A stretch of DNA of 64,000 nt from Macrostomum lignano (GCA_002269645.1 NIVC01000168.1:723297-787296); one strand, 5' to 3'. Counted from the first letter of the stretch, positions 4,044 through 63,552 are shown. Numbers and translations: made by a program. The notes: generated from the letters alone by a model not told the origin.

Positions 4044-6010
4044 TTACGAGTTGGGCAGCAATCGGTCAATCTTCTGGAAGATTTCCACCACCTCCTCGTA
4101 CCTGGTCACGTAAGACTCTCTCATTCTCTTGTGCGCGTGCTGCAGCTGCTCCAGGTTGTTGCTGAACCTTGCGAACAGGTAGTACTCAAGGAAGTCGGCG
4201 CTCTGGTCTTCCTTCAGCTCACTGAACCAGTCATTGATGCTCTGCAAGTCCGGCAGCAGCACCGCTCGCAGGCACTTCAGCAGACAGTCGAAGTTCATGT
4301 AGAAGGCCGCCTCGTTCGGAGCCACCCTTGCAGGGAAATACTTGGCCAGGTCGAGAGTGTCGCCCTGCTCCCGCTTGAATTTATTCAGGAATTTCAACTC
4401 CGGCCGCTTGTCGCTGTGGAAGCAGTGTTTCCAGGAATAGTCGTTCGTGTAGATCTCGGCCTTGATATGATTTCGAACTTTCTTCGCATCTTGCTCACCG
4501 GACAGCTCAGAGGTGAGCGGAAGCTGGCGTCTCACTCGATGCTGAGCAGAGTTTCTCAAAATCTCCTTCGCTCCATCCATATCGTTTCTGCTCAGTCTGT
4601 ACAGAACTTTCAAGCCTTCGCGAACTGAGTACGCATTTTCCGGCATCTTGGAGACAATTTCTTCGATTTTGTTTGACTTCGGACCCTGAGCAAGATCGGT
4701 CAGTGAGTTTTCCATGAGTCGTTGAATGTCTGCGTAGCCCTGAAGTGGCAGACTTACTCTGACAGGATAGAAGTAGGGCAGGAGAGTAAACGGGTGGTAG
4801 TAGAATGGATCAACACATTCACCGAGGCTGTTTACTTTGCCGATCCCCGATACCTTTTTCAAATAGTCCCTCACATGTCTGGATAAATCATTGATGACAG
4901 ATTTAAGGCGCTCCACTAATCTTTTCTTGTCTGAATGTTCGCCTTTTAAATAGAGTTCAGCATCCTTCAGAAAGAAATGGGACATGCACGCCAGCTCGAT
5001 TTTTCTGGGCTTCTTCATCTCGGTGAGCAAGAATTGAAGAGATTCTTTTAGCAGCTCAAATAAGTTGGCTCCTGTCCAGCGGTCACGGGGGGTGTTGCTG
5101 ATCATGAAGAATAAGACGGTCTTTGCGTGATACGATTTTAAACCAGGTGCGTTCTCTGACACAACTTCTCTCAGCAGGTACTTGACCAGAATGAACAGCT
5201 GACCCTGAACCGGCAACAGGCGCTTCATAATCTCCTTCTCCACAAAGCTGGTGCTCACTCGCATCTCATTTCTTTGCTTCCCAGTGGCCTCGTTTTTTCG
5301 GTGGTTTCTGATCAGATGCAGGATGAATTTTCGTTGTTTTTTGCTTTCCAGCGCTTTAATTGCATCAACGGTAGCCGTTGGAAAATTGCTTTGACCATCC
5401 AACATTTTCATGACATCAGCTGACGCCACCGCTGCTAGAGAGCAACAGCGGAAGGCCATGACTTCGTCAGTGGCTGGTCTGAGCTCTGATTCAATTGTCG
5501 TCTCTGCTGGCTTTGATTCTAAAAGCACAAATTGTTCATCGCCCAATGTTTAATCTAACTTAAAAAGTGAGGCACAATATACGAGTAGCTATTTAACGTA
5601 TGCGAATTGCTTCTTAAAGTAAACAAACCGTTCACTCAAGCTTTGACTCACCATAACTTGGGAAAATGACGTGTCCTTCTTCATATTCATGCTGTTTAAC
5701 TCCATCACAGCCACATCCAGAAATGTGAATGATTTCAGCCTTCTCCAAATGAGTAAAATCGATGTCGGATTTGGTCAGCAATCCGTTGATGCAGTAGAGG
5801 TTTTGTCCCCAACCGTCGCCGTAGCTTCCCATGATATAAATCTCATCGTTCAGCTCTGCGATGAGCTCGCGATGCTGTTCGGCCAGACACCTCTGGAAGA
5901 TCGCCCTGGGAAAGCCGATTCCCGACTTTAGCAGCGCCTTGTACAGCTGGTCACTGCTCAAATCGACTGGATTGGATTGCTCGATGATTGTGTCACCTGA
6001 AGCTTCCAAA
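4044..6010 (-). CDS. Mab-21/cGLR nucleotidyltransferase domain plus helical C-terminal region (exons 2-3 of the fusion)
   Basis: ORFs 5632..6009 and 4044..5546 carry the N- and C-lobe motifs of the cGAS/Mab-21 family. Confidence 0.88.
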
Positions 6011-9000
6011 CTAAAACAGATCCGGACATTATTTCAATTGTAAATTTACACTACAAGCGTACTAAAAAAGAAAAATTGATAATTGACTCACCTGCTCTCG
6101 ACATCTTCAGGAGATGTGGAGGGTTGCAGAATTTTCGTTAGTTTGCTGCTTACCGACAGCCGTTTGTGCTTCTCCGACAACCTCAATGCTTCCTCGATTT
6201 GTCGGTATTCCCATTGGTTGCACACCTGGGATGCTTTAAGAGCTCCAACTGTGTCGGGACGACCGAATATAACGGCCAGCTGTAGAACGTCATATTGGTT
6301 TGAGTTCTTCGCTTTCAAAGATTGCTGAGCAGCTCTGGACGAAATAAGCAGCTGGTCCAAAACATTGTGCCTCGAAATAGCTGCATGCATGGCGGCATTG
6401 TTACCATTATGATCTTGAATGCTTAAATCTGCTTTTATCCTGAGTAGCTCCTCAACACAGTCAAAATGGCCGTATCGTATTGCCAGCATCAGTGCGGTCA
6501 TTCCATCACTGTTTTTCAAATCGATACAGCCCGTCCCTGATTCAACACAAGTGACGCTTTTCTCACCAATCAGTCTAACAACACTAGCATGACCATTCTG
6601 GGCGGCAATCATGAGTGGCGTCATTCCGTGCTCGTCCTGCTGAGTCAGATCAGCCTTGTTCTCAATTAGAAGAGTCACTGATTTATCGAAGCCCGACTTT
6701 GCAGCGGTGTACAGTGCGGACTGCTTCTCTAAATTGACGTCATTCACATTCGCCCCAGCGTTCAGAAGTTGCTCTGTAAGCTCATAGTTTCCTTTTTCAC
6801 ATGAGTTGATCAATAGTGTGTTGTTGTTCCCGTCTCGTTCATTCGCCTGCTCCTTTGATTGGATCAATGCATTAACAGAATTTTTATCTAGGAGTGAAAA
6901 TATAAATGGCAACATTAAAGAAGATAGCGCTGCTCCAGCTTCGTGCAGCAAACTATAGACCTCTGAAGCGGAGTCAGCTAAACTCAAAGCAGACTGGTTA
7001 TCATTGTTTACTTTGTTAAGATCAGCACCGGCACGAATGAGCTGTTTTACAATTTCTGATCGCTTATTGAAAGAGGCGGCCATAGTGGGAGTGCAGCCAT
7101 TTTTTCCTGGTAAGTCAATGTCTGCTGCAGATTCCAGTAGGCAGTTCGTGACAACTTCAAAACCTTCTTGACAAGCAATGTGCAATGCCGCAGCTCCGTC
7201 AGATCTCTGTGAGTCAATCGCTACTCCAGCACGAACCAGATGTTCAACCATTCGCAAATTGCACCCAAAGCAGCTACAGATAAGAGCCGTGTCTCCTTCC
7301 TTAGTTACAGCGCTTATGTCTGCTCCGCACTGAATGAGGAACATCGCAAGCTTATTGTGCCCATTGGATACTGCTCTGTGCAGTGCAGTGGATTCACCTT
7401 TTCCTGGTCTATCGATATTTTCTCCATTTCTTAGAATAATTTGAACAATTTGATCTTTTCCTGACTGCGCAGCCAAATGCAAAACAGTGTCGGACTCTGC
7501 ATCCTGAATGGTGAAATCTGCACCGTGGTTGATCAGGAGCTCAAATATTTCCAGTCGTCCACTGAACGCTGCGATGTGGAGAGCAGTTGTCAAATTGTTG
7601 TCTTTTCTATCCAAATCGATATTTTTTCTGAGCAACTCTCGCACGATAGAAATGTTTTCAGACACGACTGCGAGGTGCAGGGCGCTGGACCCGTCCTTTG
7701 TAACGGCGCCTAAATGAGCGCCCGCTGCTAACAAAGTCTGAACTGTCAAAAGATTGCCATTGAGACATGCGAGTAGCAGGGGTGTCGTGTCGTTCTTCCC
7801 CAAGATTTCCAATTTCGCACCAGCAGAAATAAGCAATCGGGCTATATCTGTGTGCCCCCACTGAGCAGCCAAGTGCAAGGCAGTGGCTCCATGACCTTCT
7901 CTGTCATTGACGTTGGCACCAGATTCAATTAGTCTTTTGACGATCTTCAAGCAACCAAAGTAGGTTGAAAGGATTAAAGCAGTATTTCCATCACTATCCT
8001 TCTTGTTTACATCAGCTCTTGCATCAATCAGTAGTTCTACTATGATTTCGTGTTTATTCGCAACAGCAAGAATGAGCGGTGTGGCCTGACCTTTGCCTTG
8101 GGCATCGATGTCACTATGTGACCGCAGTAACATTTTCGCGATTTCAAAATGACCATTTTGAGCGGCCATGTGAAGCGCGGTGCTACCATTAGCGTTTCGA
8201 ATTTTCGGATCTGCGCCGAGTTCAAGAAGGCATTTAGCGGCCTTTTCCTTGCCAAAGTAGGCTGCGATGGTGAGTGCGGTGTCGCCATCGCTGTCCTGCT
8301 TGTCGATCGAGGCACTTGCATCGAACAGGAGCTGAATAACTTCAGCGTCATCATTCAGAGCTGCAGAAATCAATGCAGTCTTTCCTTGTGCAGCCTCAGA
8401 ATCAACGGTAGCTTTTTTGCTAAGGAGAAGCCACACAACAAGTTGATGACCATTTTGGGAGGCCAGAATCAGTGGCGTAGCCTGACCTTTTCCTTTGCTG
8501 TCAATATCACCCCCAGCATCCAATAGCATTTGAACGATTTCGTAGTGACCACTTTGAGCTGCCATGTGAATAGCTGTGCTGCCGTACTCATCTCGAATGT
8601 TGACACTCGCACCCGCGTTAAGAAGCATCTCGATGACTCCTGTATTGTTGCTGAACGCAGCGGACATCAATGCTGTTCGTCCATCAAAAGCTCGAAGATC
8701 AGCATTCGCTTGCTTACTGAGCAATATTTTCACTACATCAGCGTGGCTATGCATTGCAGCCAGCATGAGTGCAGAATATCCATCATTATTTACCGCGTCA
8801 ATCAGGGCATCATTATCTAACAGTAGCTGAGCCACGTCTCCACGTCCATTTAGAGAGGCCCGAATCAGAGGTGTTGTTCCATTCTTGCCAATGGCATTTA
8901 CATTGGCCCCATGTTCGAGCAGAAATCTAGTGATCTCAGGATGCCCATTTTGAGCAGCAACATGCAGAGCTGTGCACCCGTTTCGGTCTCCGTGATTGAC

Positions 9001-12000
9001 ATCAGTTTCATCAGTAATGAGTAGCGAAACGATTACAAAGTGTCCGGAGTACGCGGCTCCAATAAGCGGAGTGTCACCTTCGAGGTTCGCCAGACTGGGA
9101 TTCGCCCCATTTGCGATCAAGAGCTCAACAATGCTGTTGTAGCCAAGCAGTGAGGCGTAGAACAAGGCCGTATTACCCATGAGATCCTGTTGATTCACAT
9201 GGGCTCCAGCCAGCAGAAGCTGAACTGACTCATGGTGACCCATGCAGCTGGCAAGGATGATCGGAGTCGCATTCCCTTTCCCGATGCAGTTTATGTCAGC
9301 GCCTTTGCTGATGAGCCATTTTATCACGTCTGTGTGGCCCGTCTGGGCTGCGAGTAAAATCGGCGTCGCCCTCTCGTTGTCTGCGGCGTTAACATCTGCA
9401 GATTTACTGACCAGCAGCTCAGCGATGTCCATTCTATTGAGCAGGGATGCTAGCAGAATGGGAGAATGGCCGTGCTTATTCTTTACATTGGGGTTCGCCC
9501 CCGCAGCCAGAAGTAGCCGAGCAATTTCGAGCGAGGAGACGAATACTGCGTAGAAGAAGGCTGTGTTGCCCTTATTGTCAGGTAAGTCAACTTTGGCGTT
9601 TTTGGAAAGCAGCAGCTCTACGCAATCTTTATGCCTACAATATGTGGCGAGTAGCAACGGTGAATCTCCGTCATCGTCAACAATGTTTACATCAGCTTGA
9701 CGCTCAATCAGAAGTTGCATAACCTCGAAGTGCCCACGAGTTGCTGCCAGCGTTATGGCGGCTGCACCGCCTTTACCTCTGGAGTTGATATCAGCGCCGG
9801 ATTCTAAAAGCAGCTTCACAACTTCAACGTGACCATTTTGTGACGCACAGTGTAGTGAGTTGTGCTTTTCATTGGCGACAGCGTGAATATTGGCCTGGTG
9901 CTTCAGAAGCAAACGGACGGCTTCTACCTGACCATCGAATGCGCTGCAAATCAACGGCGTCTCTCCAGCGTCATTTGGTAAGTTGGGATCAGCTTGGTTC
10001 TCCAGCAAGCACTCAATGACCTCAATATTTCCAACAGCTACAGCCGCCAGGAGCACAGACTGGTTGCCTAAATTTTTACTCTGCTGATTGACATTAGCAC
10101 CCATCGAAACTAGCAGGTATGTAATATCCGGGAAATTCTTGAGTACAGCAAAATGCAAAGCACTCACTCCATTTTCATCTTGATGGTCGATGTTTAAGGT
10201 CTTATCCACTAGCATTTCGACTGCTTCAAAGCAGCCCGAGTAGCAAGATAATGTTAAAGCAGAATCACTTTGAGAGTTCGTCAGATTCACATCTGCACCA
10301 GAATCCAACAGCATTTTCACCAGCTTCGGGTGTCGGTTCAGACATGCCAGCATGAGTGGTGTGGCTCCATTTTTCCCTTTCAAATTCACATCTGCACCAG
10401 CTAGCATAAGCAGGCTCGCAATCTCAAGGCTGCCATCTTGAGCAGCACAGTGCAAAGGCTGAACACCCTCTGATGCTCGAACATGGATGTCTGCTCCGTG
10501 TTTAATTAATATTTTAACAGTTTCAGCACTCTTTGAAAAGGATGCATAGTGCAGGCAAGTTGTGCCATCCGAGCTTTGCGAATTGATGTTTTTTGAAGCA
10601 GCAGCCAGCATTCTAGCGACCTCAGGATTGCCGAGAGCGCATGCCATCATTAAGGCTGTGAGTCCATGAGCAGCGTCGGTCAAATCGGGGTCTGCTTTCG
10701 CGGATAACAAAATCTCGACGGAAGCAGCGCAGCCTCGGAAGGAAGATATGGCAGCAAGCATAAGTGCTGTTACTCCATCGGAATCCTGTAAGTTTGGATT
10801 TGCTCCGGCTTCAACCAGCATTTCGACAACGGGGATTTTTTCACTCGCGCATGCCAGCATCAGGGAAGATCTTCCAAGCGCATCCTGGTGATTAATGTCT
10901 GCTCCAAATTTTATTAAAATTTCACACATTTGAGATACATAATCTTTCATACCTCTTACACAGGCAGCCATCAAGCAGCTGAGCCCATTATGATAAGCAA
11001 AATTAATCTCTGCTCCACTTATTAAAAGAAGCTCCAAGATTTCAGGCCTATTGTTTACACAAGCCGACAAAATTGCCGTGCTCGTATTCTTCCCTCGACT
11101 GTTCACATCGGCCATTGCGCCGACGAGCATTTTCACTATTGGAAGGCAGCCCTGTTGAGTAGCACAATGGATTGCACGGGCTCCTTCCGCATCTTGAATC
11201 TCTAGATCAGCACCCGCATCAATGAGCAGCTCTGCGCATGGCATTCTACAGAAATAAGCCGCAAGTATCAGTGCTGTGTTTCCATTCTTGTCTTGTTGAT
11301 TAACGGCAGCACCAGAGTTTAGTAGCATCAGAACAATGTCATCGAAGCCCCGTTCCGATGCCAAGATTAGAGCTGATTGCAGATCCAAATCTACAGCGTT
11401 CACATCAGCAGAGTACATTAGTAGTAATTGGACAATGTCGGTGAATCCTCCCATTGCAGCAACTGTCAATGGGAACTGACCAAACAATCCAGATTTATCT
11501 GGATCCGCCCCAAACGAAAGAAGCTTCAGAACTGCATCCGTGTTGTTCAGGGCACATGAAGTGAATAAAGCAGATAATCCAAAATCACTTGAGTGGTTAA
11601 CATCCACCCCTGACTCCAAGATCAGACTCAGTGTTTTGACTGACCTGCTGACAGCTGCCAAGGTCAAAGCGGAGTCGCCACTATCGTTTGTAGCGTGAGG
11701 GTCGGCACCCACAGACAGCAGCTCCTTGACTATGTCAGACCTTCCATGAAGGGACGCAATCGTAAGCGCAGTGTTTCCATTCTTTCCTCTGATTTCTAGC
11801 GCTGCTTCAGCAAGCAAAAGCAAGACGAGAACCTCGTAGTGACCATTCTGAGCCGCCATGTGCAGAGCAGTTGATCCATGACTGTCTCTGAGATTCGGAT
11901 TGGCGCCAGCTGACAGAAGCAGCGCAGTTGCCATCAGCTGGCCCGTGTAGGCGGCCAGAATGAGTGCACTGTCTCCATCCTCATCCTGATAGTTTACATC

Positions 12001-14360
12001 AGCACCAGCGAGCAGCAAGTCTGAAGCGATTTCAAAGTGGCCTTGAATGCTGGCCAAGATAAGCGGTGTTCCACCTCCCTTTCCGATCCAATTGACATCA
12101 GCTCCTGCATCAATCAGTAGAGAAACGATTTCTCTGTGGCCATTCTGAGCAGCGAGAAGTAACGGAGTTGCGAGTGTGCCATCGACATAGTCCGGATTTG
12201 CGTCAGCTTCCAATAATAGTTTGACCACAGCCAGGTGACCGGAGTAGGCAGAGTGGGTGAGGGCTGCTCTTCCCATGCAGTCGTATGCATTAACATTGAC
12301 GCCCTTCTTGATGAGCAGGTTCACAACCTCGTCCAAACCTTTGGCAGCTGCAATGATGATTGGTGTGGCGTCACCCTTGCCCACATGCTCGGTGTCTGCT
12401 CCAGCCTCAATCAACTGCTCGGCAATACTCAAATAACCATTCTGAGCAGCGCAAGACAACGCTGAGCCTCCTTCGTTATCCGATGGGCTCACCAACGCCT
12501 GAGCTTTCAGTAGTGCGACCACTATTTTCTCAAAGCCTAAGAAAGAAGCAATAATTAGTGGTGTATTTCCTCCGTCATCTCTTGTCTCAACATCGGCTTG
12601 CGACTTGAGCAGCAACTCAACAACATCCGAATGACCATTCTGGACAGCGAGTCGCAACGGAGTTCCTCCTCTCTTGCCCCTCCAGTCGACATCGGCTCCA
12701 GCATGCAGCAGGTCTCTGCAGAGCTTGACGTGTCCGATTTGAGCAGCCATTATGAGAGGCGTTGCGTTCTGATAGTCCGGCATATCGACATTGGCTCCGG
12801 CTTTGATCAGCACTGCTGCGGTGTCTCTGTATCCGCTCTGAGCTGCGAGTCGCAACGGAGTTCCATCGTTTCTGCCCTTCCAGTCCACTTCCGCACCTGC
12901 AGATAGCAGAGCATCACAAATCTGCGAGTAGCCGCTCTGAGCTGCGAAAATCAGCGGCGTCGCTCTTTGAAAGTCGGCTGCGTCCACCTCGGCTCCAGAG
13001 TGCAAGAGCAGCCGTGTGACCTCCAAGTGACCCTCAGCTGCTGCGAAATGAAGAGCCGTCTTTCCCTCGATATTCGTTTTGTTGATCTCTTCCGGCTCGC
13101 TGCTCACGATAAATTCCACATCTTGCAAGTTTCCACTCCATGCAGCCTCCATCAGCTGAGTTCTCTGCATTCCTGAGAACAAGTTACTGAGCTGGGTTTG
13201 AAGCTCAGAAACCTTCTGCTTTGGCTCTTCAGCCTGAGGTCCGTACGGCCTGGCCTTGAACTTTGGAGCCCTCAGATTGGCGTAAGTCTGCAGACTGACC
13301 AGAATCGCGCTGCTTCTGGTCTCAGCCGCCACATCGAAAATCGAGTTTCCGCTGCTGTCAAAGACGTCGGCTTCTGCCCCGGCCTCGAGCAGCTGCTTCA
13401 CCACGGCCTCTCGACCTGCTTGCACAGCGAGCCATAGCGCTGTTCTCCCGAAGCTGTCCCGGTCTTCCAGCAGCTCCTTGGTATGCGCCAACTGGCTGAC
13501 GATCTCCTCGTGTCCGAGCTGCGCGGCCATCATCAGCGGTGAGCAGCCGCCTTCGTTGGCGATCCTCGGGTCGGCACCGGCCCGCAGCAGCTGAGCGGCG
13601 ATCTCGCGGTGTCCCTCTTGACAGGCGAGCAGCAGCGGGCTTGTTGAGTCGTTCTGCAGCAGATTCACGTCTGCACTGGCTTCAATCAGGTGAGCAACAA
13701 CATTTCCGTGCCCGTTCTGAGCGGCTGCACTCAGAGGCGACGTCCCAAACTCGTCCTGGACGTTGATGCGAGCACCTCGATCCACCAGTAACTTGACGAT
13801 TGCCTCGTGTCCATTTTGAGCAGCCATTATCAGCGGTGAAACAGGCTTTTCAGGAATATCAAGATTTGATCGTTTGCTCATCATCAGAATGAGCAGTTCC
13901 TCTCGGCCGAGCTCGCATGCTGTGATGACCTGCCAGGTCAGGTCTGCATTGCTTGGTGCGCACTGCAGCACCATCTGCATCAGCTCAGGCTCATCGTCTC
14001 TCAAAAAATTCTCCATCAGCTCGTCGAAGGTTTGTAAATCCAAGAAAGGCGAATCTGTCTTTTGAAGAATCAACCGCGCGACATTCACGTGACCTCCTCG
14101 GAGAGCCGCTAGTAAAGCCGTCTCTCCCTGATCGTTCCTAACGTCCAGTCGAGCTGAGAAGTCAAGGAGAGTGTGCACAATGTTCACGTGATCGGCTCTC
14201 GCAGCGATCAGTAGTGGCGTGTCTCCCGCTGCGTCGGTATCGTCCGGAGCGAAGCCAGCCTGAAGCAGCTCCAAAACTCTCTCGGACTGTCCGACGCTGC
14301 TCGCGACGTGCAGCTCTGTTCGACCTTGGCTGTTGCGACGATTTGGCGTTTTCTTTACCT
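4044..14360 (-). CDS. Giant ankyrin-repeat / cGAS-like receptor (Mab-21 nucleotidyltransferase) fusion; exons 14360-6092, 6010-5652, 5518-4044; start codon in an unlocated upstream exon
   Basis: Donor AG|GTGAGT at 6091 joins acceptor ttttag| at 6011 in phase 2 (AGT then TTG). Donor G|GTGAGT at 5651 joins acceptor gcttttag| at 5519 in phase 1 (GAA). Both joins keep frame. The frame is open upstream of 14274 to acceptor tttcag| at 14361 and adds one more ANK repeat (GRTELHVASSVG). NTase motifs are GSYGDG, SDID and TDEVMAFRC. Mab-21 motifs are EMRVSTSFVEKEI, LFILVKYL, LKSYHAKTVLFF and CMSHFFLKDAELY. Confidence 0.88.
6092..14360 (-). CDS. Ankyrin array exon (8,269 nt; roughly 75-80 ANK repeats)
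   Basis: Recurrent 33-aa G-x-TPL/TAL-x-x-A-x-x-x-G-H-x-x-x-V-x-x-LL-x-x-GA pattern throughout ORF 6088..14274. The repeat count is estimated from length. Confidence 0.97.
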
Positions 14361-55400: not shown

Positions 55401-58400
55401 GCCCTGATGTCCCTGCAGTCGAGTCCAAGCAGGGCCCTGCGGAGGGTGGGGTTTCCATCTGCTTTAATACAGCTGTTTTCACCAAACCTCGTACAAATGC
55501 TTTCAACAGACTGTCCAGTGAACTTCTATTATCATGAGGGCGCCTGCCGGCACCACCTTGTCGATGGCATCGGCGGCATCCCTCGCTCTGTTGCTGAGGC
55601 CTACTGCAAGAGCGTTCACTGGCTGAAGTCAGGAGGCCTGTTCCAGCCAACCAGCTACTATGACTATGCAGCTTTGCGACTGGCCTATGTTGACTTGTCA
55701 CTGTGAGTAAAATAGCTCTTTTTGTCTCTAGCTGGCTGGTGTAAAGCACTCTCTACTACGCCTTCCTCAAATCATCTGTCAAATTGCGCCTTAGTGTTTC
55801 TGAAAGCGCTAACTAAAAATTCCTCCCGACAGGAACGTCTGTTACGAAAATTGTTTTATTTGACGCTCCAAATCCTATTTTAAATAGTCAGTTGGCTTGC
55901 TTCGACATTTAAAGCAAAGAACTAAAGATGTGTTGTTTAAGAACCCCAAATTGGTCCTTCCAATGTTAAAAGTAGCGCCAACGTGTGATGTAAAGACTAC
56001 AGCAGCAGAATTACCTCTTTTCACAAATTTCTGCAGAAAATTCAATCAAAGCCAGCAGCCACTGCGCCGCGACGCCAGCTTTCACATGGACGCCAGACAG
56101 CGCCCATCCGACGGTCAGTGGGTCACGAGTTCGAACTCCAGCCTGGCTTGGAGCCACTGGGCGCCCAGCCAGCCAGCGGTCGGGTCCTGCGCCACCTCGC
56201 GTCTCACTGAAGAGGCCTGGACTTCTGTTGATTGCGACTCCAGCCGAGCCCACGTCATCTGCCAGATCGAGGCTGGTCAGTTTTTTTTGCTGCGGCTTCA
56301 ATTGTTGCTCGATCTTGGATCGAAGCAGTGTTTTTCCGGAGCCCGCAAAACATAAATTTAGGGCACGAATCTTAATCGCTTTGTTGTGGGAAGACCATAC
56401 ATAGGAAGCATCGAGTCCTTACTTCAACTCGGGGGTTGGAGAGGGAAGAGAGGGGAGAGAGTAGAAGGGAGGGAGGAAAGGGAGAGGTAAGAGAAAGGAG
56501 AGAGTAGAGAGGAGAGAGGAGAGAGGAGAGAGAGATGAGAAAAGAGCGAAGAAGGGGGAGGGAAGAGAAGAGAAAAGAGGAGGGAGATGGAAGAGAGAGA
56601 AGGGAGAGAAGAGAGGAGAGGGAAGCGATAAAGGGGCGAGAGAAATGAGAAAAAAGAGGAGAGGGGGAGAGAGAGAGGAGAGAGGAGAGAGGAGAGAGGA
56701 GAGAGGGAGAGAGAAGAGAGAGAAGAGGGGAGAGGGAAGAGAGAAAAAGAGGAGAGAGGGGGAGAGGGGAGAGGGAAAAGAGAAGAGAGGAGAGATGGGG
56801 AGAGGGGGAGAGGGAAGAGAAAAAGAGGAGAGAGGGGGAGAGAGAAGAGAGGAAAGAGGGGAGAGGAGACAGAGAGAGGAGAGAAGAAAGCTGAGAAGAG
56901 ATGAGAAGAGACACCAACCTCGAGCGGGCTGGATTGCTATTGAGAAGTTTCAAAGGCCCCGCGGGCGGGAGTTCTCTGACCCTACTCTAACTAGTCCATT
57001 CTCATTTGTAAAGAATGCCTTCCAATCTGAGTTGGCTTTGCTTGTGTTTTTTCAGTCTACACCAGCGGGGTAGGGTTCTTTGATTATTAAACGCCACTAA
57101 CAATTTTTTTCAAGAATTTTTTGTGATTATTAACTTGCTGATGTTTCAGTGACAGCTTGAAAAAAGTCTTTATTTTTTCTTCTAGACGAGAATCAGCATC
57201 TGGACTGCAGCAGGCCGTTCTACAATGTGATTTTCAACTACTCGGGAAATGCAGAGGGCAAGCGGGCACTTTACTATGGCAGCATTCAGTCTGCACTCGT
57301 TAAGTGCCAGGCCGGCGCCTGCAACACACACATGTCCTGAAGCCTTCTCAAGGTGAAAATAAAGTCAGCCTCAAATGACAGTGATTTATGCATTCACCTG
57401 AACCTTAGCAAGGTATACGTGCAATTTTAAAAAAATCTACCAAGCTATCTCCATTCTACAAGTACTTCATTCCATAGCTTGTGATAATGTATAATTTGCA
57501 TTGATTGTACATATGGGTAGAACCGTAGATCAAGGTACATGTAAGTTAAACCAGTGATAGCCGATTTCAATTATAGTAAACCAACTTAGGTGATGCAACA
57601 AATATAAAGTTTCATGTAACTCAGCGGGGGTTTGGGTTGTGTGGCTTTGCCAATGTACTCAAATTTGGTCCCTCTGGCCCATGAGCTTGAGTATGCTCTG
57701 TCCAGTGTACTTGACTCTAGACTGTTATAGGCATGTTGGTTGTATGCTTCCTACTTGTATAATAAAATCAATTGATGATAAATTCTGCAAGGCACGATTT
57801 CTTTTCACAAACCAAGCTCGACCTGTATTTGTTAGTGACTTGACTTGCAGTCCATAGTGAGCTTCAAGCCTACTTTCAATATTTCTACTCACCTTGCCAT
57901 ACATGTATAAAGAAATGAGCCATGCAACGCATGCACTATCACACGAAGAAAATCGCCTCAAGATCTGCTTGTTGTGCTACAAAAAGGGCTCATCAATGCA
58001 ACGAATAGGTAATGCCTCGCTGAAACGCATTCAGGCACACTTTTTGCCCAACTACAATGCGAATGATGAGCAGCTACCTGCAGCACTCTGTGCCCGATGC
58101 AACAAGCTTCTGGCTGACGTCGACAAGGGCATAAAAGCGCCGAATGTTTTGCCGAACTCCTCTGAGGTCGTAAAGGTGAGCCCAACAAAGATTACGCGAC
58201 AGTCCAGCAGTTGTGCTTGCAAAATATGTGAGACTGCCCGGTTCAACCCGATTGGGAAAGGACTGGGAAAATGGAAACCAGAGCCACATTCGCTTGGACG
58301 ACCCGCGTGTTCGGATCCAGATCATGGTCTGCCACCGGCACAACCTGTTGTCATCTGCCAGCGCTGCCACTCAATGGTTGGCAGAGGTTTGCCTCACTAC

Positions 58401-61400
58401 TGCACGCAAACACAGCGACGAGAAATTCTATTCAGTAAGTTGTCGCTAGACCGTCGAGGTGCCGAAATCCACGCAAGTGACGTGATCAAAGCTAAGGCTG
58501 CTTCCACCGGCTCAAACTCTAGATTTCAATTGGCAACTAGAGGTCGTGATCTTACAGTGTGTGTTGGGCAACGGGCTGGTAGTTCTACATCAATGAGAGG
58601 TGGCTGCGCCGTACCAGCAGAGGAATTCAGCCGATTCCAGCAGACGCTGTGTTTGAGCAGTCGGCAAACTAAGTTGGCCGCCCAATTTTTTCGAGCATGG
58701 AAAGGACGCAAGAGCATTGAGCCAAATTTGCGCAGCAAACTGAGCGCCATCGACTCTGCTCTAGATGATTTGTTTGAGTTGACTAACCTAGAGATGGACT
58801 GTGCCAAAGGAAAAAGGGAAATGCGCAGCATTGTATTCTGCACTGATCCTCTGGCTCTGATTGACAGAGTGATGGCACGTCGTCAGGTCAGTGCAGATGA
58901 CGGCGCATTGATTAAAGTTGGCATCGACAGCGGAGGTGGCTTCTTGAAATTTTGTGTTAGCATTGTGTCTGCTCAAGGTTTAAAAGATCAACCTACCGGA
59001 AGTCGCAGCACGTACGCAGAAGGCGCATGCCGTTTCCATTTTGAGGATGGAGGAGTCCGTAAACTGCTCCTGCTTGCCATTGCCGAATCTGTTTCCGAGT
59101 CCTACGATAATCTGCAGCAGATCCTGAATCTTCTTAATTTGCAAGGATTTTCATTCTGTGCAGCAGTTGATATGAAAATTTCGAATGCGATCCTGGGACT
59201 TCAGTGCTGCAGCAGCACCCATCCCTGCCCTTGGTGTAAGACTGCCAGGATCGATTTTTCTAATCCAGACCGCACGAACGTGTTGAGATCGATCGGCGGT
59301 ATTCGGCTACAGGCATTTGAGTACCAGCGCACTGTAGAAGAAAAAGCGCCGCGCAACGTGTCTGCTGCTGCTTTCAAAAACTGTGTGCGTTCTCCTCTGC
59401 TCGAAGTTCCAGACAGCACAATGGTGCTCCAGGCCATTCCACCAATGGGGCTGCATCTCTTGCTTGGCGTGACCAATCGACTATTCGAAGAACTGGAAAC
59501 TCAACTGCGAGGACTCGAAGACTGTCAGATAAGCACCGATGACTGGCTACAGCAGCTTGGCCTTCGACGACCATTGCAGAACGGTGGGAACTTTGCCGGA
59601 AACGCCTGCGAGTGTCTTCTAAATGGCGTCGACATTTTGATTGCAATGCTGGCTCAGCACAATGTGTTTTCGGCAATGCCTGTAGCTCATGCCCTACGCT
59701 GCTTCCGCGATGTGAAGGCTTCGTGCTTTGGTATGAGTGTGTGTGGAGACTTTGAGAATCGAGTCCGGGCATTCGAACAAGCCTATATCGATCTTGGAAT
59801 CCGCGTCACCCCGAAAGTCCACGCTGTTATTGACCACGTTGTCCAGTTTTTGAACATGTCCAATATAGCTGGAGAACCCAAGAAGGGACTTGGCTTCTGG
59901 TCTGAGCAGGTGGTTGAGACTGCACACCACGATTTCAGCAGCATGTGGCAAGACTTTCGGATCGATTTTCATCATCCATCGTATCCAGATCGACTGCGCA
60001 AGTGTGTTGTTGCATACTGCTCTCGTCATGCCTAAACAAAATGTGAACTAGCTAAATCAATCAAGACTGCGAATTAGGATTATACATTTCTCTTTATTGG
60101 GATGAACAAATAGTTCTTAGTCAGACCCTGTAGACTGGAAAGCGAAATTAAACAGAACATAAACAGGAAGTAAATAATTGGAATCTTTCAAAAAGCGTGT
60201 TATCTTACCCATTCAACCCACCGAAATACAATGTCCGCATTTCAAAATTCCATTCTAGCTTTGCAATGCATGCATAGAGATAGTTAGTTGACTAGAAAAT
60301 GAAATCTAAAAGAGACTAGAGGATCGCTAGCTATTCTCTTATCCCGATAGGACCCTAAAGTTATTTTTTCTTTTATTTATTATTGAATTAATGATAGGAA
60401 TACATTAGGTAGCTGGTGGAAACCTTAATTTAATTCTTTCTATGGTAAACTTATATTGCAGAAGTCCTTGTTCTTACCTATCATCATGGAAAGGGAATAG
60501 CTTCCTTTGAAAACTCAGCAGTATTTAATAGAAGGATATGCCTATGGTTCCAAGGGCCAAAATGGCATGAATACGAGAGCTGTGCAGCAAATTTACAGGC
60601 TCACAGCCAATGAGATGGTAGCTACGTATGAGGAGGGAATAATAGCTACAACTCAAAAGCAAGCGATAGAAAAATATCTGGGATAATATTCTCTCCATGC
60701 CTTGCATCACTCACGCACAATTTTGCGCAATGCTTCTTTGTCCACTTTTATGTAGCATTCTCTGTACTGTACGAGTGTTTATGCTGTTTTTTGTTACATT
60801 TAGTCACAATTATTCATTGATGTTTCAATTTATACTTTATACTTTGGACTTTGTAAGGTGATGGCATACCTATGAATTATAATGAAAAGTTTCTGACTTG
60901 TTTTAGGATCATTTTTTCAAATTTCACAAACTCTTGTAGACACTCATTTTTTGCATCACGCATATTGAAAACCAATAGTAATTAGGTCATATGGTAATAA
61001 AGTGCTGTAAATCAGAGATAGCTCGGGAGATTTTTTTGAAATTGCACATATGTTGTGCTAAGGTCCAGATGAGTGTGTAAATTATTGTCATTTCAGGCTG
61101 ACTTTATTTTCACCTTTAAAGGGCTTCAAGACATGTGTGCAACAGTCTTCAAGCCGGTGTTGGAGAGCCAGCCATCTACAGCTCAACCGTGCACTCGCGT
61201 TCCATTGGCTTTCAGCCCAGCTGGCTGCAGAATCAGTTCTTCATCGAACAAATCTGCCGAAGTAAGCGCGAACGGCTCTGATAAATTAAGTTTCGGTCTT
61301 CAGATTAAATAATTTTTCTGTGCTCCTACGACCTTTTTTTACTCAATATATTATATAGTATTTAATATTGCATTGCACCTGCCCCAATTGGGCCAGATGT

Positions 61401-63552
61401 GCAACCGACAGCTCAGTTGCAGCTATTGCGCGGCGCATCTGAAGGCTGTTCTGGGAAGGACTGGGGGTCACCACACACACCCTCAATTCCCCCAGCTGAT
61501 GCTTTCACCCATTTTGCAGCTGCATGGGTGAACTGAAGCAATGCAGAGTGTCTTGCTCATGAACGCAAATTGTTTCAGTGGGATCGGGAATCGAACCCCC
61601 GACCTTCAGGTTTTAAGTCCGACGCTCTAACCACTAGGCTACAATCCCCCTCTAAGCTACAACCCCTCTAAGCTACAACCCTAATATACAACCCCCTAAG
61701 CTACAACCCATCTAAGCTACAACCCCTCTGAGCTACAACCTCTTCTAAGCTAAAACCCCTCTTAAGCTACAACCCCTCTAAGCTACAACCCCTCTAAGCT
61801 ACAACCCCTCTAAGCTAAAACCCCTCTTAAGCTACAACCCCTCTAAGCTACAACCCCTTCTAAGCTACAACCCCTCTAAGCTACAACCCCTCTAAGCTAC
61901 AACCCCTTCTAAGCTAAAACCCCTCTAAGCTACAACCCCTCTAAGCTAAAACCCCTCTTAAGCTACAACCCCTCTAAGCTACAACCCCTCTAAGCTACAA
62001 CCCCTCTAAGCTAAAACCCCTCTAAGCTACAACCCCTCTAAGCTACAACCCCTTCTAAGCTAAAACCCCTCTAAGCTACAGCCCCTCTAAGCTAAAACCC
62101 CTCTAAGCTACAACCCCTCTAAGCTACAACCCCTCTATGCTACAACCCCTCTAAGCTACAACCCCTCTAAGCTACAACCCCTTCTAAGCTAAAACCCCTC
62201 TAAGCTACAACCCCTCTAAGCTAAAACCCCTCTTAAGCTACAACTCCTCTAAGCTACAACCCCTCTAAGCTACAACCCCTCTAAGCTACAACCCCTCTAA
62301 GCTACAACCCCTCTAAGCTACAACCCCTCTAAGCTACAACCCCTCTAAGCTACAACCCCTCTAAGCTACAACCCCTCTAAGCTAAAACCCCTCTAAGCTA
62401 CAACCCCTCTAAGCTACAACCCCTCTAAGCTACAACCCCTCTAAGCTACAACCCCTCTAAGCTAAAACCCCTCTAAGCTACAACCCCTCTAAGCTAAAAC
62501 CCCTCTTAAGCTACAACCCCTCTAAGCTACAACCCCTCTAAGCTACAACCCCTCTAAGCTACAACCCCTTCTAAGCTAAAACCCCTCTAAGCTACAACCC
62601 CTCTAAGCTAAAACCCCTCTTAAGCTACAACCCCTCTAAGCTACAACCCCTCTAAGCTAAAACCCCTCTAAGCTACAACCCCTCTAAGCTACAACCCCTC
62701 TAAGCTACAACCCCTCTAAGCTACAACCCCTCTAAGCTAAAACCCCTCTAAGCTACAACCCCTCTAAGCTACAACCCCTCTAAGCTAAAACCCCTCTAAG
62801 CTACAACCCCTCTAAGCTACAACCCCTCTAAGCTAAAACCCCTCTTAAGCTACAACCCCTCTAAGCTTCAACCCCTCTAAGCTAAAACCCCTCTAAGCTA
62901 CAACCCCTCTTAAGCTACAACCCCTCTAAGCTACAACCCTTCTAAGCTACATCCCCCTAAGCTACAGCCGCGATTATACTCAAATCAATCGGTAAAATTC
63001 TATTGACACCCATCATTTTGGTATCGGTAACAAAGTATTTTTAAAAGTAAAACGGGAAAAGTAGCTTTTCAGAGAAGTAACAATTGTTAAATTATAGTAA
63101 ATAGTAACGAGTGACTTACTGAACACTACCAATCTACCACTAGCAGAAGACTGCTGGCACAGCCTGACTTCTGCCATGTCCAACGTAAGCGCAACGCTGT
63201 TTACAAACGCCACGAATGGCAGCGATTCGCATTCGTTGATATCGTACACGACTCTGAGTAGCTCGAACGGAGTTTTCAACGGATACTTCTTGACGGTGCG
63301 CATCCGGTCAATTCAATTTCAAGGCTTCTCTGAAATTGGAGCATTAGTAAATTTATTGGCATAACCAATATTCGAAACCCGCAGATCACATTTAATAAGC
63401 AAGTTCGAGTGACCGGTTTCGGCTTCATGGGTGCGGGCAACAATTTAAGGATTGGAGACAAACCGGTTGCCTACGCAGCCGTGAAGCTGCTGTTCTTTGA
63501 AGCGGAAGCGGCTGCGTGGGTCAGTGCAGCAACGGCGCTAAGTCTGAACAAG
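22444..63552 (+). CDS. Giant multi-exon secreted/extracellular mosaic protein (F5/8C, CTLD, F-type lectin-like, kringle-like, FAMeT-like, PAN-like); continues beyond the window; interrupted by a transposon at 57327-61139
   Basis: Exon 1 (22444-22531) encodes the signal peptide MVQPLCTFAGPICWLLSAFLALCVSAQNI. More than 40 further candidate exons have canonical splice sites, and most checked junctions are phase-compatible (e.g. 23348-23697, 25267-25420, 25518-25732, 27167-27296, 28726-28900). A few junctions near 29510-30600, 31930-32010 and 33180 are unresolved. Confidence 0.85.
23348..25420 (+). CDS. F5/8 type C (discoidin)-like domain 1 (two exons)
   Basis: VWIYFPFDFNVTGFLVYG...RVTSFKAGYS...CVLQLDLVGYP. 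Confidence 0.7.
23716..24394 (+). mobile_element. 5'-truncated non-LTR retrotransposon (RNase H plus CCHC zinc knuckle, I/Ingi-like group) with (GAA)n tail
   Basis: VHLQWVPGHAGIPGNEAVDEIAKQG, then CRLCGDGEETAAHLLISCP. The segment is very GC-rich, ends in a (gaa)6 tail and is flanked by a possible 4-bp TSD CTAG (23712-23715 and 24395-24398). Confidence 0.9.
25010..25120. repeat. 9-bp tandem repeat (gacatacta), about 12 copies
   Basis: Direct tandem repeats. Confidence 0.95.
26310..27050. repeat. 33-bp palindrome-rich minisatellite (gtgtcactgacagctgtttataaatgcgcgctt), about 22 copies
   Basis: Tandem units; translation period of 11 aa. Confidence 0.97.
27773..28282. mobile_element. Possible non-autonomous DNA element with short TIRs
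   Basis: gtagaactacc..aagggg at the left is inverted relative to ccccccctcggtagttctac at the right. Confidence 0.4.
28726..29514 (+). CDS. C-type lectin domain 1 (two exons)
   Basis: CPPGWMRGLTGFCW...WSEADQFC...GRL; YHVGLRR...WLWSDGT...DCAAL...VPCTSKLHFICQ. Confidence 0.85.
29640..30432. repeat. 16-bp minisatellite (ctccgacacttcatat) with variant units, about 50 copies
   Basis: Direct tandem repeats. Confidence 0.97.
31801..32110 (+). CDS. Kringle-like domain 1
   Basis: CTVTGDDYEFYDYGVTMTQSGRACQAW...CYF...EYC. Confidence 0.55.
32191..33753 (+). CDS. F-type lectin (FTP)-like / galactose-binding-fold domain 1
   Basis: ATMDGND...; LNNFTVKV...C...FWCERPIAGRYV. Confidence 0.55.
32477..32765 (+). 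mobile_element. tRNA-derived SINE, copy 1
   Basis: A box tagcctagtgg, degenerate B box, and central ccttgatcaagacacttaactct...ctgtaaaatggg. Homologous to the copies at 36335 and 61385. Confidence 0.85.
33854..35327 (+). CDS. FAMeT (Methyltransf_FA)-like domain 1
   Basis: RWEISIGGNGTAAFL...DDYQSLQLVWTQLGVDVSIGG resembles YEIVIGGWGN...EFRxFWIxWxxGxIxVG. Confidence 0.5.
34074..34679. mobile_element. MITE with about 85-bp TIRs containing a nested second MITE (34173-34364)
   Basis: Outer acaacttaatc...ggacggtaaactcgaaaatcatggcgaaaaaaaattagaggctcgttt...gttctatggc is mirrored at 34595-34679. Inner termini are ggccggatgcagaaagct and agctttctgcatacggcc. Confidence 0.8.
35405..36009 (+). CDS. F5/8 type C domain (three exons; first intron GC-AG)
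   Basis: YIQVSFLKSVTAFVLATQ...HSTDGESF...ESRWMLYGC. Confidence 0.7.
36092..38941 (+). CDS. F-type lectin-like domain 2
   Basis: ITDAS...GPWIAVDFVSLRYIEFALVFG...TLKITELEIYGNP. Confidence 0.55.
36335..36605 (+). mobile_element. tRNA-derived SINE, copy 2
   Basis: A box tagcccagtgg, B box ggttcgattccc, same body as copy 1. Confidence 0.9.
36969..37241. mobile_element. MITE-like element; its terminus is shared with the sequence at about 15225-15240
   Basis: ggagcgtcgcca and tggcgacgcccc form inverted termini; gcgtcgccaccggga matches the reverse complement of 15225-15240. Confidence 0.55.
37400..38680 (+). mobile_element. Degraded non-LTR retrotransposon 3' end (CR1/L2-group-like), apparently interrupted by a 35-bp array
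   Basis: NKTCPKCHMGIESEVHFLFKC at about 38448-38510, followed by FKNLTAEEKVFYLMN in another frame. The left flank assignment is weaker. Confidence 0.55.
37685..38415. repeat. 35-bp minisatellite (gtgaaactgtcaacattgacgagtagcgaaatcat), about 21 copies
   Basis: Head-to-tail units with no spacers; internal GTCAA-ca-TTGAC hairpin. Confidence 0.97.
39317..40930 (+). CDS. F5/8 type C domain (start of the second cassette)
   Basis: DWLSLYLPYTYALTGLLIRGG...VTSFQVFYS...RQLKIDLVGYP. Confidence 0.75.
40036..40300 (+). mobile_element. Second tRNA-headed SINE-like element
   Basis: Acceptor-like stem GTGGCTG/CGGTCAC, A box tggcagagtg and B box ggctcgattcc, followed by a structured body. Confidence 0.55.
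41160..42260 (+). CDS. Linker module plus C-type lectin domain 2
   Basis: CPPGFVPMGDTCL...ARRVC...GDL; IHVGIVRSGSVWQWLDGT...WKLGQP...FACQ. Confidence 0.85.
43011..43325 (+). CDS. Kringle-like domain 2
   Basis: NCLIAQGDKENYVYPVNVTAYGRVC...NYC...PFCYV...QSCILHNC. Confidence 0.55.
43450..44244 (+). CDS. F-type lectin-like domain 3
   Basis: SLVVDFKSLHFINGVDL; LRLYVGNS...C...IAC...RFLAL...LNITALMVYG. Confidence 0.55.
46448..47158 (+). CDS. FAMeT-like domain 2
   Basis: FNARLRQQTLKVWLTN is paralogous to MFARLRNSGLKLWLTN at about 33950; RYIVHLSGNG...DEFANLRVTW. Confidence 0.5.
47290..50195 (+). CDS. F5/8C, F-type lectin-like, F5/8C and linker domains
   Basis: VRLYPRKWQNGLELRWQLYGC; LAVDGN...LC...W...SFCEFEIYGYP; AIGLEDGRV...RAKVVRLLP...LRFELLGYP. 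Confidence 0.75.
48765..49135. repeat. 25-bp minisatellite (gggatgcctgggatttctatagctt), about 15 copies
   Basis: Direct tandem repeats. Confidence 0.95.
50475..51345. repeat. 32-bp palindrome-rich minisatellite (gcagatcagctagctatacatgcatgtctcat) with 21-bp deletion variants
   Basis: Tandem units containing AGCTAGCT and ACATGCATGT. Confidence 0.95.
51512..52369 (+). CDS. C-type lectin domain 3
   Basis: CPTNSLRHGRFCY...AQSIC...GQLA; NWAS...GDCLV...QWRTVACD...PFLCE. Confidence 0.85.
52530..54730 (+). CDS. PAN-like module, two F5/8C domains and a linker (includes a GC-AG intron at 52953)
   Basis: EEWLQVDFLHKVTVQSVAMSG...VTSYIILYS...GRSFRLYP...KLELFGC; RVFSVITAG...ISSYDLRYG...RLQFGVLAFP. Confidence 0.75.
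54935..55330 (-). mobile_element. Non-LTR retrotransposon 3' fragment with short-repeat tail, carrying an inserted copy of host exon sequence
   Basis: CRECGHFICECPVFTQDRLTYLG...PRIF and FHQLVRYLRATGRA; tail aagtcaagtaagtcaag. Confidence 0.65.
55510..56275 (+). CDS. C-type lectin domain 4
   Basis: CPVNFYYHEGAC...AEAYC; WSHWAPSQP..GSCA...WTSVDC...HVICQ. Confidence 0.85.
56428..56915. repeat. Polypurine (GA/GGA) low-complexity tract
   Basis: Almost exclusively A and G on the + strand for about 490 nt. Confidence 0.95.
57327..61139 (+). mobile_element. Transib/RAG1-like (Chapaev-related) DNA transposon, 3,813 bp, apparently intact
   Basis: Termini CACACATG...CATGTGTG; imperfect TIRs of about 112 bp (57327-57438, 61028-61139); perfect 5-bp TSD CAACA at 57322-57326 and 61140-61144. 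Confidence 0.9.
57894..60035 (+). CDS. RAG1/Transib/Chapaev-type DDE transposase, 713 aa
   Basis: N-terminal H-x7-C-x2-C...P-x3-C-x2-C motif. Catalytic D (GIDSGG), D (AVDMK) and E (SEQVVETAH). Zinc ligands PCPWC and PKVHAVIDH. LHLLLG and FAGN motifs correspond to RAG1 LHCDIG and GN. The ORF is uninterrupted. Confidence 0.9.
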   Translation: MPYMYKEMSHATHALSHEENRLKICLLCYKKGSSMQRIGNASLKRIQAHFLPNYNANDEQLPAALCARCNKLLADVDKGIKAPNVLPNSSEVVKVSPTKITRQSSSCACKICETARFNPIGKGLGKWKPEPHSLGRPACSDPDHGLPPAQPVVICQRCHSMVGRGLPHYCTQTQRREILFSKLSLDRRGAEIHASDVIKAKAASTGSNSRFQLATRGRDLTVCVGQRAGSSTSMRGGCAVPAEEFSRFQQTLCLSSRQTKLAAQFFRAWKGRKSIEPNLRSKLSAIDSALDDLFELTNLEMDCAKGKREMRSIVFCTDPLALIDRVMARRQVSADDGALIKVGIDSGGGFLKFCVSIVSAQGLKDQPTGSRSTYAEGACRFHFEDGGVRKLLLLAIAESVSESYDNLQQILNLLNLQGFSFCAAVDMKISNAILGLQCCSSTHPCPWCKTARIDFSNPDRTNVLRSIGGIRLQAFEYQRTVEEKAPRNVSAAAFKNCVRSPLLEVPDSTMVLQAIPPMGLHLLLGVTNRLFEELETQLRGLEDCQISTDDWLQQLGLRRPLQNGGNFAGNACECLLNGVDILIAMLAQHNVFSAMPVAHALRCFRDVKASCFGMSVCGDFENRVRAFEQAYIDLGIRVTPKVHAVIDHVVQFLNMSNIAGEPKKGLGFWSEQVVETAHHDFSSMWQDFRIDFHHPSYPDRLRKCVVAYCSRHA
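61385..61650 (-). mobile_element. tRNA-derived SINE, copy 3
   Basis: Minus strand ggggattgtagcctagtggttagagcg...ggttcgattccc followed by the same body as copies 1 and 2. Confidence 0.9.
61651..62966. repeat. 16-17-bp satellite (cccctctaagctacaa), about 80 copies, contiguous with the SINE 5' end
   Basis: The minus-strand unit GGGGTTGTAGCTTAGA matches the SINE head GGGGATTGTAGCCTAG. Confidence 0.97.

Follow-up and report, generated by a model that had tools for sequence, protein, structure and literature searches.

The window analysed here is a 64-kb stretch of the Macrostomum lignano genome (assembly GCA_002269645.1, NIVC01000168.1:723297-787296), and it contains at 57327-61139 a complete transposon that, as we argue, belongs to the Chapaev group. 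These boundaries are those proposed in the initial annotation of the window, and they were found to be right. A repeat search revealed one long inverted repeat with a left arm at 57327-57460 (plus strand), beginning with CACACATGTCCTGAAG, and a right arm at 61006-61139 (minus strand). In the pairwise alignment both arms open with the exact sequence CACACATGTC, and outward similarity ends at precisely that base. The terminal inverted repeats (TIRs), with CACACATG as starting bases, are long and imperfect as described before, but they measure 134 nucleotides (nt) at 82% complementarity and not about 112 bp. The 18-nt terminal pattern has two matches in the window, both of which are the element ends, where 0.12 are expected. 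CACACAT opens both TIRs, in agreement with the CAC ends first reported. The element is flanked by a perfect 5-bp target site duplication (TSD), CAACA, at 57322-57326 and 61140-61144, with the next base outward mismatched; this duplication had been recognised correctly, too.

The transposase is encoded on the plus strand by a single exon. This open reading frame (ORF) of 710 amino acids (aa) extends from the first ATG at 57903 to the stop codon at 60035 and has no internal stop. A second in-frame ATG is located at 57915, and the frame as listed begins with a TTG codon at 57894. It was described as an intact DDE ORF, which holds: the catalytic residues are D342 (58926-58928, in GIDSGGGFLK), D423 (59169-59171, in AVDMK) and E672 (59916-59918, in WSEQVVETAH). 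The 1.1 kb of non-coding DNA that follow the ORF as far as the end of the element (60036-61139) have 35% G+C, and in their AT-rich portion before the right TIR (60036-61005) indels differ among copies. No open frame of more than 61 aa is listed for these 1.1 kb. The 0.58 kb located 5' of the transposase gene contain listed ORFs of at most 78 aa, none of which is conserved. An adjacent kelch-type RAG2-like gene was not found inside the element, as had been noted. Since no ORF of more than 78 aa exists outside the transposase gene, a second gene, RAG2-like or other, cannot be present.

A Pfam search and a single-sequence PDB search of the window protein gave nothing significant, and without a profile no sequence similarity to RAG1, RAG1L or HzTransib was detected (phmmer against PDB chains, including any RAG1). 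A HMMER scan of 1.8 billion representatives yielded 3034 clusters of relatives (E<1e-3), of which 375 pass E<1e-30. The majority of these clusters represent proteins of 650-750 aa which are collinear with the window protein and match it from residue ~5 to the end; the transposase family is evidently large and its architecture fixed. Repeating the homologue search with the large alignment brought hardly anything further, and a search for related loci with a 9-sequence alignment yielded only three short metagenome contigs with no usable ends. Conservation was scored in an alignment of 74 full-length relatives, using the numbering of the 710-aa protein. Invariant or near-invariant in the core are D342, E399, D423, K425, C442, C445, L517-H518, H640, H645, E668, E672 and H675, with D342 and E672 among the invariant residues. 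Two zinc motifs belong to this set, the C(2)C motif C442-x2-C445 (59226-59237) and the H(4)H motif H640-x4-H645 (59820-59837).

When the 74 sequences were used as a profile against PDB, zebrafish RAG1 (3jbw, E=2.2e-5; 6dbi, E=6.7e-5) and amphioxus BbRAG1L (6b40, E=1.1e-4) were found, and no other credible match. The alignment of the profile with RAG1 spans the second Asp, CxxC, LH, NGN and HxxxxH up to SE..E, with D423 placed on the second catalytic Asp of RAG1 and E672 on its SEGNES motif. The spacing between D423 and the CxxC cysteines (+19/+22) as well as the HxxxxH motif agree with D708, C727, C730, H937 and H942, which we take to be the corresponding residues of mouse RAG1. An AlphaFold2 model built on the 74-sequence alignment reached a mean pLDDT (predicted local distance difference test) of 89.8. 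In a Foldseek search of PDB with this model all 44 matches at E<=0.001 were RAG1 or BbRAG1L chains, the best with E=5.3e-14; they cover about 570-680 aligned columns (maximum 677) at ~13% identity, and the next match was Hermes with E=0.026. The transposase had been called RAG1-like at the outset, and both searches support this name: it is predicted to be RAG1-like in fold and in catalytic architecture. Only the profiles and the structure model brought this relationship to light. HzTransib is absent from the profile and Foldseek matches in PDB, although RAG1 and BbRAG1L are present. Either Chapaev cores are nearer to RAG1 and RAGL than to this one insect Transib, or a search filter missed HzTransib.

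The N-terminal part of the protein is formed by a Chapa-type zinc domain of 165 aa (57942-58403, H14 to C167) with 13 conserved Cys and His residues. Conserved are H14, C22, C25, P59, C63, C66, C104, C106, C109, C152, C155, H165 and C167. The zinc motif that had been read as H-x7-C-x2-C...P-x2,3-C-x2-C is present as H14-x7-C22-x2-C25 ... P59-x3-C63-x2-C66 and is invariant or near-invariant in the 74 relatives. The domain is composed of a C4 module that is ZAD-like, a second cluster of Cys residues, a linker with an AT-hook-like GRP motif and a knuckle of the CCHC type, and was modelled alone with a pLDDT of 84. For the first module (~aa 18-79, 57954-58140) the nearest structure is the ZAD of Drosophila Pita (7pok_C, probability 0.99, E=0.06, 2.5 Å over 62 columns). 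A sub-threshold Pfam match to zf-AD (E=0.028) agrees with this result, and neither of the two is significant alone. The Chapa domain and the arthropod ZAD may thus be structurally linked. ZAD domains are zinc-dependent dimerisation modules; therefore, by analogy, it is possible that the first module dimerises the transposase.

According to the alignment and the structure model, a disordered basic linker that follows the second Cys cluster and precedes the CCHC knuckle carries a [KR]GRP motif, which is AT-hook-like and is represented in the window protein by G132, R133 and P134 (58296-58304). Among the 74 relatives, the G is found in 55, the R in 49 and the P in 52. The non-core zinc region of RAG1 reportedly has a role in nucleic-acid binding and nuclear import. 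Within RAG1's nonamer-binding domain (NBD), a GGRPR motif touches the A-tract of the nonamer (PMC12711392). The GRP linker of the transposase may read A-tracts of the TIRs in a similar way. Both the ZAD-like module and the AT-hook-like GRP motif look like new details of the Chapa domain.

The Transib superfamily was defined to comprise Transib, TransibSU (together with RAG1), Chapaev and Chapaev3 (Kapitonov and Koonin, 2015; PMC4411706). The Chapa domain is the complex N-terminal zinc finger of Chapaev, Chapaev3, TransibSU and RAG1, and the canonical Transib transposase is a core without an extra domain (PMC4411706). Chapa domains of named Repbase families are printed in Additional file 5 of the same paper. 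We scored a hidden Markov model (HMM) of the N-terminal domain (175 alignment columns, Z=1e6) against these published sequences, which were read from the PDF supplement by optical character recognition (OCR). Chapaev-2_HM (3.9e-20), Chapaev-1_AA (1.1e-12), Chapaev-5_HM (1.6e-10) and Chapaev-1_HM (2.2e-9) were matched best, followed by RAG1L of bat star (3.9e-4) and sea urchin (0.033); the Chapaev3 sequences (E 0.57-57) and the RING-bearing Chapaevs gave no significant match. The Chapaev/RAG1-type zinc domain that had been assigned to the N-terminus is confirmed by these matches. Chapaev-1_HM, -2_HM and -5_HM of Hydra and Chapaev-1_AA of Aedes form the RING-less set, with the pattern HEENR-x2-C-x2-C...P-x3-C-x2-C...TR-x-C-x-C-x-IC-x2-AR, and the window protein shows it likewise. 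This RING-less subgroup is documented by Kapitonov and Jurka (2007) and by Kapitonov and Koonin (2015).

Further evidence comes from Hydra vulgaris. The protein XP_065683561.1 (P0048), whose cluster has 24 members on Hydra chromosomes, shows 90% identity with the Chapaev-5_HM N-terminal fragment read by OCR and, judged by this identity, is the Chapaev-5_HM transposase. It aligns end to end with the window protein (30% identity, 711 columns, E=3e-97). The signature of Chapaev/CMC transposases is C(2)C, LH and H(4)H (PMC4079192; PMC12730594), and it is present as C442-x2-C445, L517-H518 and H640-x4-H645. A Chapa domain and a Transib/RAG1-like core with neither RING nor RAG2 is the published Chapaev architecture, and we therefore read the element as a new family of a known group and not as an intermediate. 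A literature search found no paper linking Chapaev with Macrostomum.

Hypothetical proteins of M. lignano match the window protein at 99% identity. The encoding contigs of its 90%-identity protein cluster were taken from assembly GCA_002269645.1, which provided seven more loci with the whole element, 98.5-99.4% identical to the window copy. Three of these loci (L001-L003) have common flanks and were for this reason regarded as one insertion in homeologous or duplicated contigs; the flanks of the remaining loci are unrelated. This results in six independent insertions, five besides the one in the window, with 98.5-99.8% identity overall. In all six, the CAC...GTG ends are directly bordered by a perfect direct repeat. 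It is 5 bp long in four insertions (CAACA, TCTCC, GGGTA and TAATA) and 4 bp in the other two (TTAA and GTCA), for which no 5-bp reading is possible. The 710-aa ORF is intact in four of the six insertions. The copies L024 (NIVC01001009.1, 2735-6563) and L025 (NIVC01000997.1, 2736-6563) have the nonsense codon R172* in common and are found at different loci with different 5-bp TSDs; therefore, defective copies were mobilised in trans. Among the variable sites, 25 are in synonymous codons and 15 are non-synonymous, and 1.9% of the coding sites vary among the copies compared to 3.2% of the non-coding sites. This reads as the pattern of a lineage that transposes under selection for a working transposase (purifying selection). 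The family appears to be young and recently mobile in M. lignano, and it is apparently active.

At both ends of the window element an A-rich tract, AAAATAAAG, follows 22 nt past the first seven bases (57356-57364, plus strand; 61102-61110, minus strand), which fits the earlier observation of such a tract 21-23 nt past the heptamer. The spacer is equal at both ends, hence the window element shows no 12/23-type asymmetry. The seven terminal bases agree with the heptamer of the recombination signal sequence (RSS), CACAGTG, and with the Transib consensus, CACAATG, at positions 1-4 only. The exact 9-mer AAAAAAATC is located 95 nt past the heptamer at both ends, at positions 103-111 counted from the end, and within the element it is confined to the two TIRs (57429-57437, plus strand; 61029-61037, minus strand). 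It is part of a conserved block, TGCAATTTTAAAAAAATC, at positions 94-111 from each end. AAAAAAATC is the nonamer consensus of Transib given by Kapitonov and Jurka in 2005 (PMC1131882).

The same 9-mer occurs in two related families. One of them, L004 (NIVC01000691.1, 4503-7870), is a second Chapaev family of M. lignano with 49% aa identity to the window transposase; its TIRs are 216 nt long and 99% identical, and its ends have CAGCGCG in place of CAC. The TIRs of both M. lignano families are collinear and homologous in the alignment. The outermost 16 nt are likewise similar among families (CACACATGTCCTGAAG versus CACAGTTGTCCTGAAG). The proximal tract of the window element aligns with an exact AAAAAAATC of L004 (4531-4539 and 7834-7842), located 21 nt past the first seven bases of L004. 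The block TGCAATTTTAAAAAAATC recurs at 101 in L004 with one mismatch, and TGCATTTTGAAAAAAATC is its counterpart at 144 in L012, a marine-metagenome family with 38% aa identity, in which the 9-mer lies around 182-190. Exact AAAAAAATC is found in the TIRs of all three families, at an end distance of 103 nt in the window family, 29 nt in L004 and 144 nt in L012. We take the A-tract motifs as conserved, putative transposase-binding sites. Identity of the 9-mer with the Transib nonamer is a lead, and could reflect common descent or a coincidence among A-tracts. An RSS-like end layout (CAC, ~22 bp, A-tract) in a Chapaev family looks like a new detail.

TSDs were less clear in the related families. 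No TSD adjoins the ends of L004; to obtain a TCTGT repeat, both ends must be moved by 2-3 nt, and this repeat is too weak for use. The flanks are unrelated in L005 (26% aa identity; 135-nt TIRs at 99%; ends CACAGTTG), in the marine family L012-L015 (ends CACAGTTGTCCTGAAGG) and in L026 (529-nt TIRs; ends CACTGTG), probably because short-read assemblies join the flanks of different copies, and these mismatches were given no weight. Another relative is found inside an annotated protein of M. lignano: a stretch of P0028 (UniRef A0A1I8I628, 2033 aa) is 49% identical to the window transposase. The gene model is named 'Arf-GAP with coiled-coil, ANK repeat and PH domain-containing protein 2' and is probably a chimeric annotation with a swallowed transposon fragment.

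From these data we conclude with good confidence that the element is an autonomous cut-and-paste DNA transposon of the Chapaev group (CMC/Transib superfamily) of the RING-less subgroup which has recently moved in M. lignano. With the known RING-less Chapaevs it has in common the CAC...GTG termini, a single transposase gene, the Chapa domain and the C(2)C/LH/H(4)H motifs, and in both RING and RAG2 are missing. It differs from them in its host, which as far as found represents a new phylum for the subgroup, in its long (134 nt) imperfect TIRs and in the two A-tract motifs per end. Five observations weigh against this assignment. The published hallmark of Chapaev is a TSD of 3-4 bp (PMC4079192), and with a 5-bp TSD in four of six insertions the window family overlaps this range but is shifted upward. 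The named references consist of N-terminal fragments read by OCR and do not extend to the catalytic core. L004, L005 and L026 have no clean TSD. Hairpin chemistry and DNA binding by an AT-hook/NBD-like region rest wholly on analogy. Finally, four amino-acid changes, N175I, G253S, E446K and P497S, are private to the window copy and lacking in the other five insertions. In one Transib lineage 2-, 3- and 5-bp TSDs were described (bioRxiv 10.64898/2026.08.26.747230), and TSD length is no longer a firm classifier in the clade.

The private changes could mean that the family is active and the window copy a dead or crippled passenger, moved by the transposase of other copies. N175I affects a majority-conserved position, and the R172* copies demonstrate that movement in trans occurs. 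However, the ORF of the window copy is intact with all invariant catalytic and zinc residues kept, and its TIR ends are identical to those of the other copies. We therefore consider a passenger state of the window copy rather unlikely, though worth keeping in mind.

Much less probable is the interpretation given in the initial annotation, which saw in the element an undescribed lineage standing between Transib, Chapaev and RAG1L, with a bearing on how the V(D)J recombinase arose. It can draw on the prevalence of 5-bp TSDs, on ends composed of CAC, a ~22-bp spacer and an A-tract on both sides, with the exact AAAAAAATC in the TIRs of the window family and two related ones, and on profile and fold searches that reach RAG1 and BbRAG1L. 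Vertebrate RAG1 and the RAG1L proteins (ProtoRAG BbRAG1L, TransibSU) resemble the window protein in the predicted core fold, the W-S-E-x3-E motif, HxxxxH and a Chapa-type N-terminal zinc region. The mixture of 5- and 4-bp TSDs (4:2) resembles RAG-mediated transposition in vitro, where 92% of intermolecular and 69% of intramolecular events gave 5-bp TSDs and the others mainly 4 bp (PMC1131882). However, the N-terminal domain and the whole protein group with named Chapaev families (HMM and Chapaev-5_HM alignment), their architecture was already described in 2015, and more than 3000 clusters of relatives have the same layout; by these comparisons the element falls into a described group. No direct sequence match connects it with RAG1, RAG1L or Transib. 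TransibSU and RAG1L proteins have >30% identity with the RAG1 core over ~600 aa, and the window protein is below this mark with ~13% in structural alignments. In contrast to RAG1 and RAG1L, it has no RING/ZFA and no RAG2-like gene and is detected only with a profile, and the element is mobile in multiple copies, unlike RAG1, which is a host gene. Membership in a described family of like architecture and TSDs of another length than 5 bp in further copies had been named beforehand as speaking against an intermediate; both now apply, as two of the six copies have 4 bp. TSD length, moreover, varies even within Transib (bioRxiv 10.64898/2026.08.26.747230).

A canonical Transib transposon is hardly credible. 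The DDE core of HzTransib and Drosophila Transib1-5 falls in the same superfamily, and the window element resembles them in its CAC ends, in its TSDs (5 bp in four of six copies) and in a layout of heptamer, ~22-23 bp spacer and A-rich nonamer-like tract, with the nonamer consensus AAAAAAATC in its TIRs. In contrast, the window protein has the 165-aa Chapa domain, an N-terminal zinc domain which Transib lacks and which contradicts the core-only definition (PMC4411706), and the element has equal spacers at both ends without 12/23-type asymmetry. HzTransib gave no detectable match to the window protein by sequence, profile or fold with the tools used. Apart from Transib, Chapaev3 (Merrow, Garfield, Conan) was compared, which shares with the window element a core of the CMC type, its CAC termini and an N-terminus rich in cysteines. 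Chapaev3 elements create 3-bp TWA TSDs, and their N-terminus starts with a motif of the type C-x-N-x-x-D-x-F-C-Y-x-C-G. The window family differs by its TSDs of 4-5 bp, without TWA, and its N-terminal HMM has no significant match in Chapaev3. A domesticated host gene or an assembly artefact, for which only the 'hypothetical protein' annotation at NCBI could be cited, is practically out of the question given full TIRs, perfect TSDs and near-identical copies at six unrelated loci.

By analogy with RAG1, BbRAGL and Transib, the following course of transposition is conceivable for the Chapaev element. A dimer of the transposase would bind both 134-nt TIRs via the subterminal A-tract motifs, pair the ends and nick beside the terminal CAC. 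Hairpin formation on the flanking DNA would free the element, whose 3'-OH ends would then be joined to the target at positions 5 bp apart, or 4 bp in some cases, and such a stagger would account for the observed TSDs. A RAG2-like partner, which is not encoded, would presumably not be needed. TIR binding and pairing, nicking, hairpins and strand transfer are all modelled on these relatives. Directly supported are the DDE and zinc architecture, the fold, the multi-copy mobility with TSDs of 4-5 bp and the trans-mobilisation of defective copies.

A broader and more tentative idea, to which we give less than even weight, concerns the whole Chapaev-Transib-RAG clade. The Chapaev lineage might keep a possibly ancestral end architecture and integration geometry, that is, a CAC heptamer-like end, a ~22-bp spacer, a AAAAAAATC-type A-tract read by an AT-hook/NBD-like element, and a mostly 5-bp, occasionally 4-bp stagger like that of RAG in vitro.

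The surroundings of the element are partly repetitive. Just upstream, at 56372-57073, GA-rich low-complexity DNA gives rise to long spurious ORFs on both strands, and just downstream, at 61634-61695, a short tandem array with a 13-18-nt unit (CTAAGCTACAACCCC) was observed. When the empty site is reconstructed by joining 57187-57326 to 61145-61266, a frame of 85 aa is open across it, with splice-like borders, a polypyrimidine-AG upstream and GT downstream. An insertion into a host exon is unsupported, since the 85-aa frame has no Pfam match or homologue and may be due to chance. In a distant part of the window, an uninterrupted ORF of 2728 aa on the minus strand (6088-14274) consists almost wholly of ankyrin repeats. 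It is adjoined by a 500-aa ORF on the same strand (4044-5546) that matches the Mab-21 C-terminal domain (E=1.2e-7).

In the transposon clade that yielded RAG1, Chapaev is to our knowledge the branch on which least work has been done, and a literature search found no structure or activity assay of any Chapaev element. What is new here is modest, a young Chapaev family in a flatworm with TSDs of 4-5 bp where 3-4 bp are quoted, besides the end motifs and the N-terminal features described above. For the origin of V(D)J recombination, the family adds supporting detail (RAG1-like fold, 5/4-bp TSDs, RSS-like ends) and no new intermediate. The family is intact, its copies are near-identical and defective ones were moved in trans, and transgenesis works in the laboratory flatworm M. 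lignano; a first functional study of a Chapaev transposase is therefore practicable with this family, which might also provide a new means of gene delivery in the animal. If the ends are indeed ancestral and the family is still active, it would be the first experimentally tractable Chapaev element and could show directly whether heptamer/nonamer recognition and hairpin chemistry are older than the split of Chapaev and Transib.

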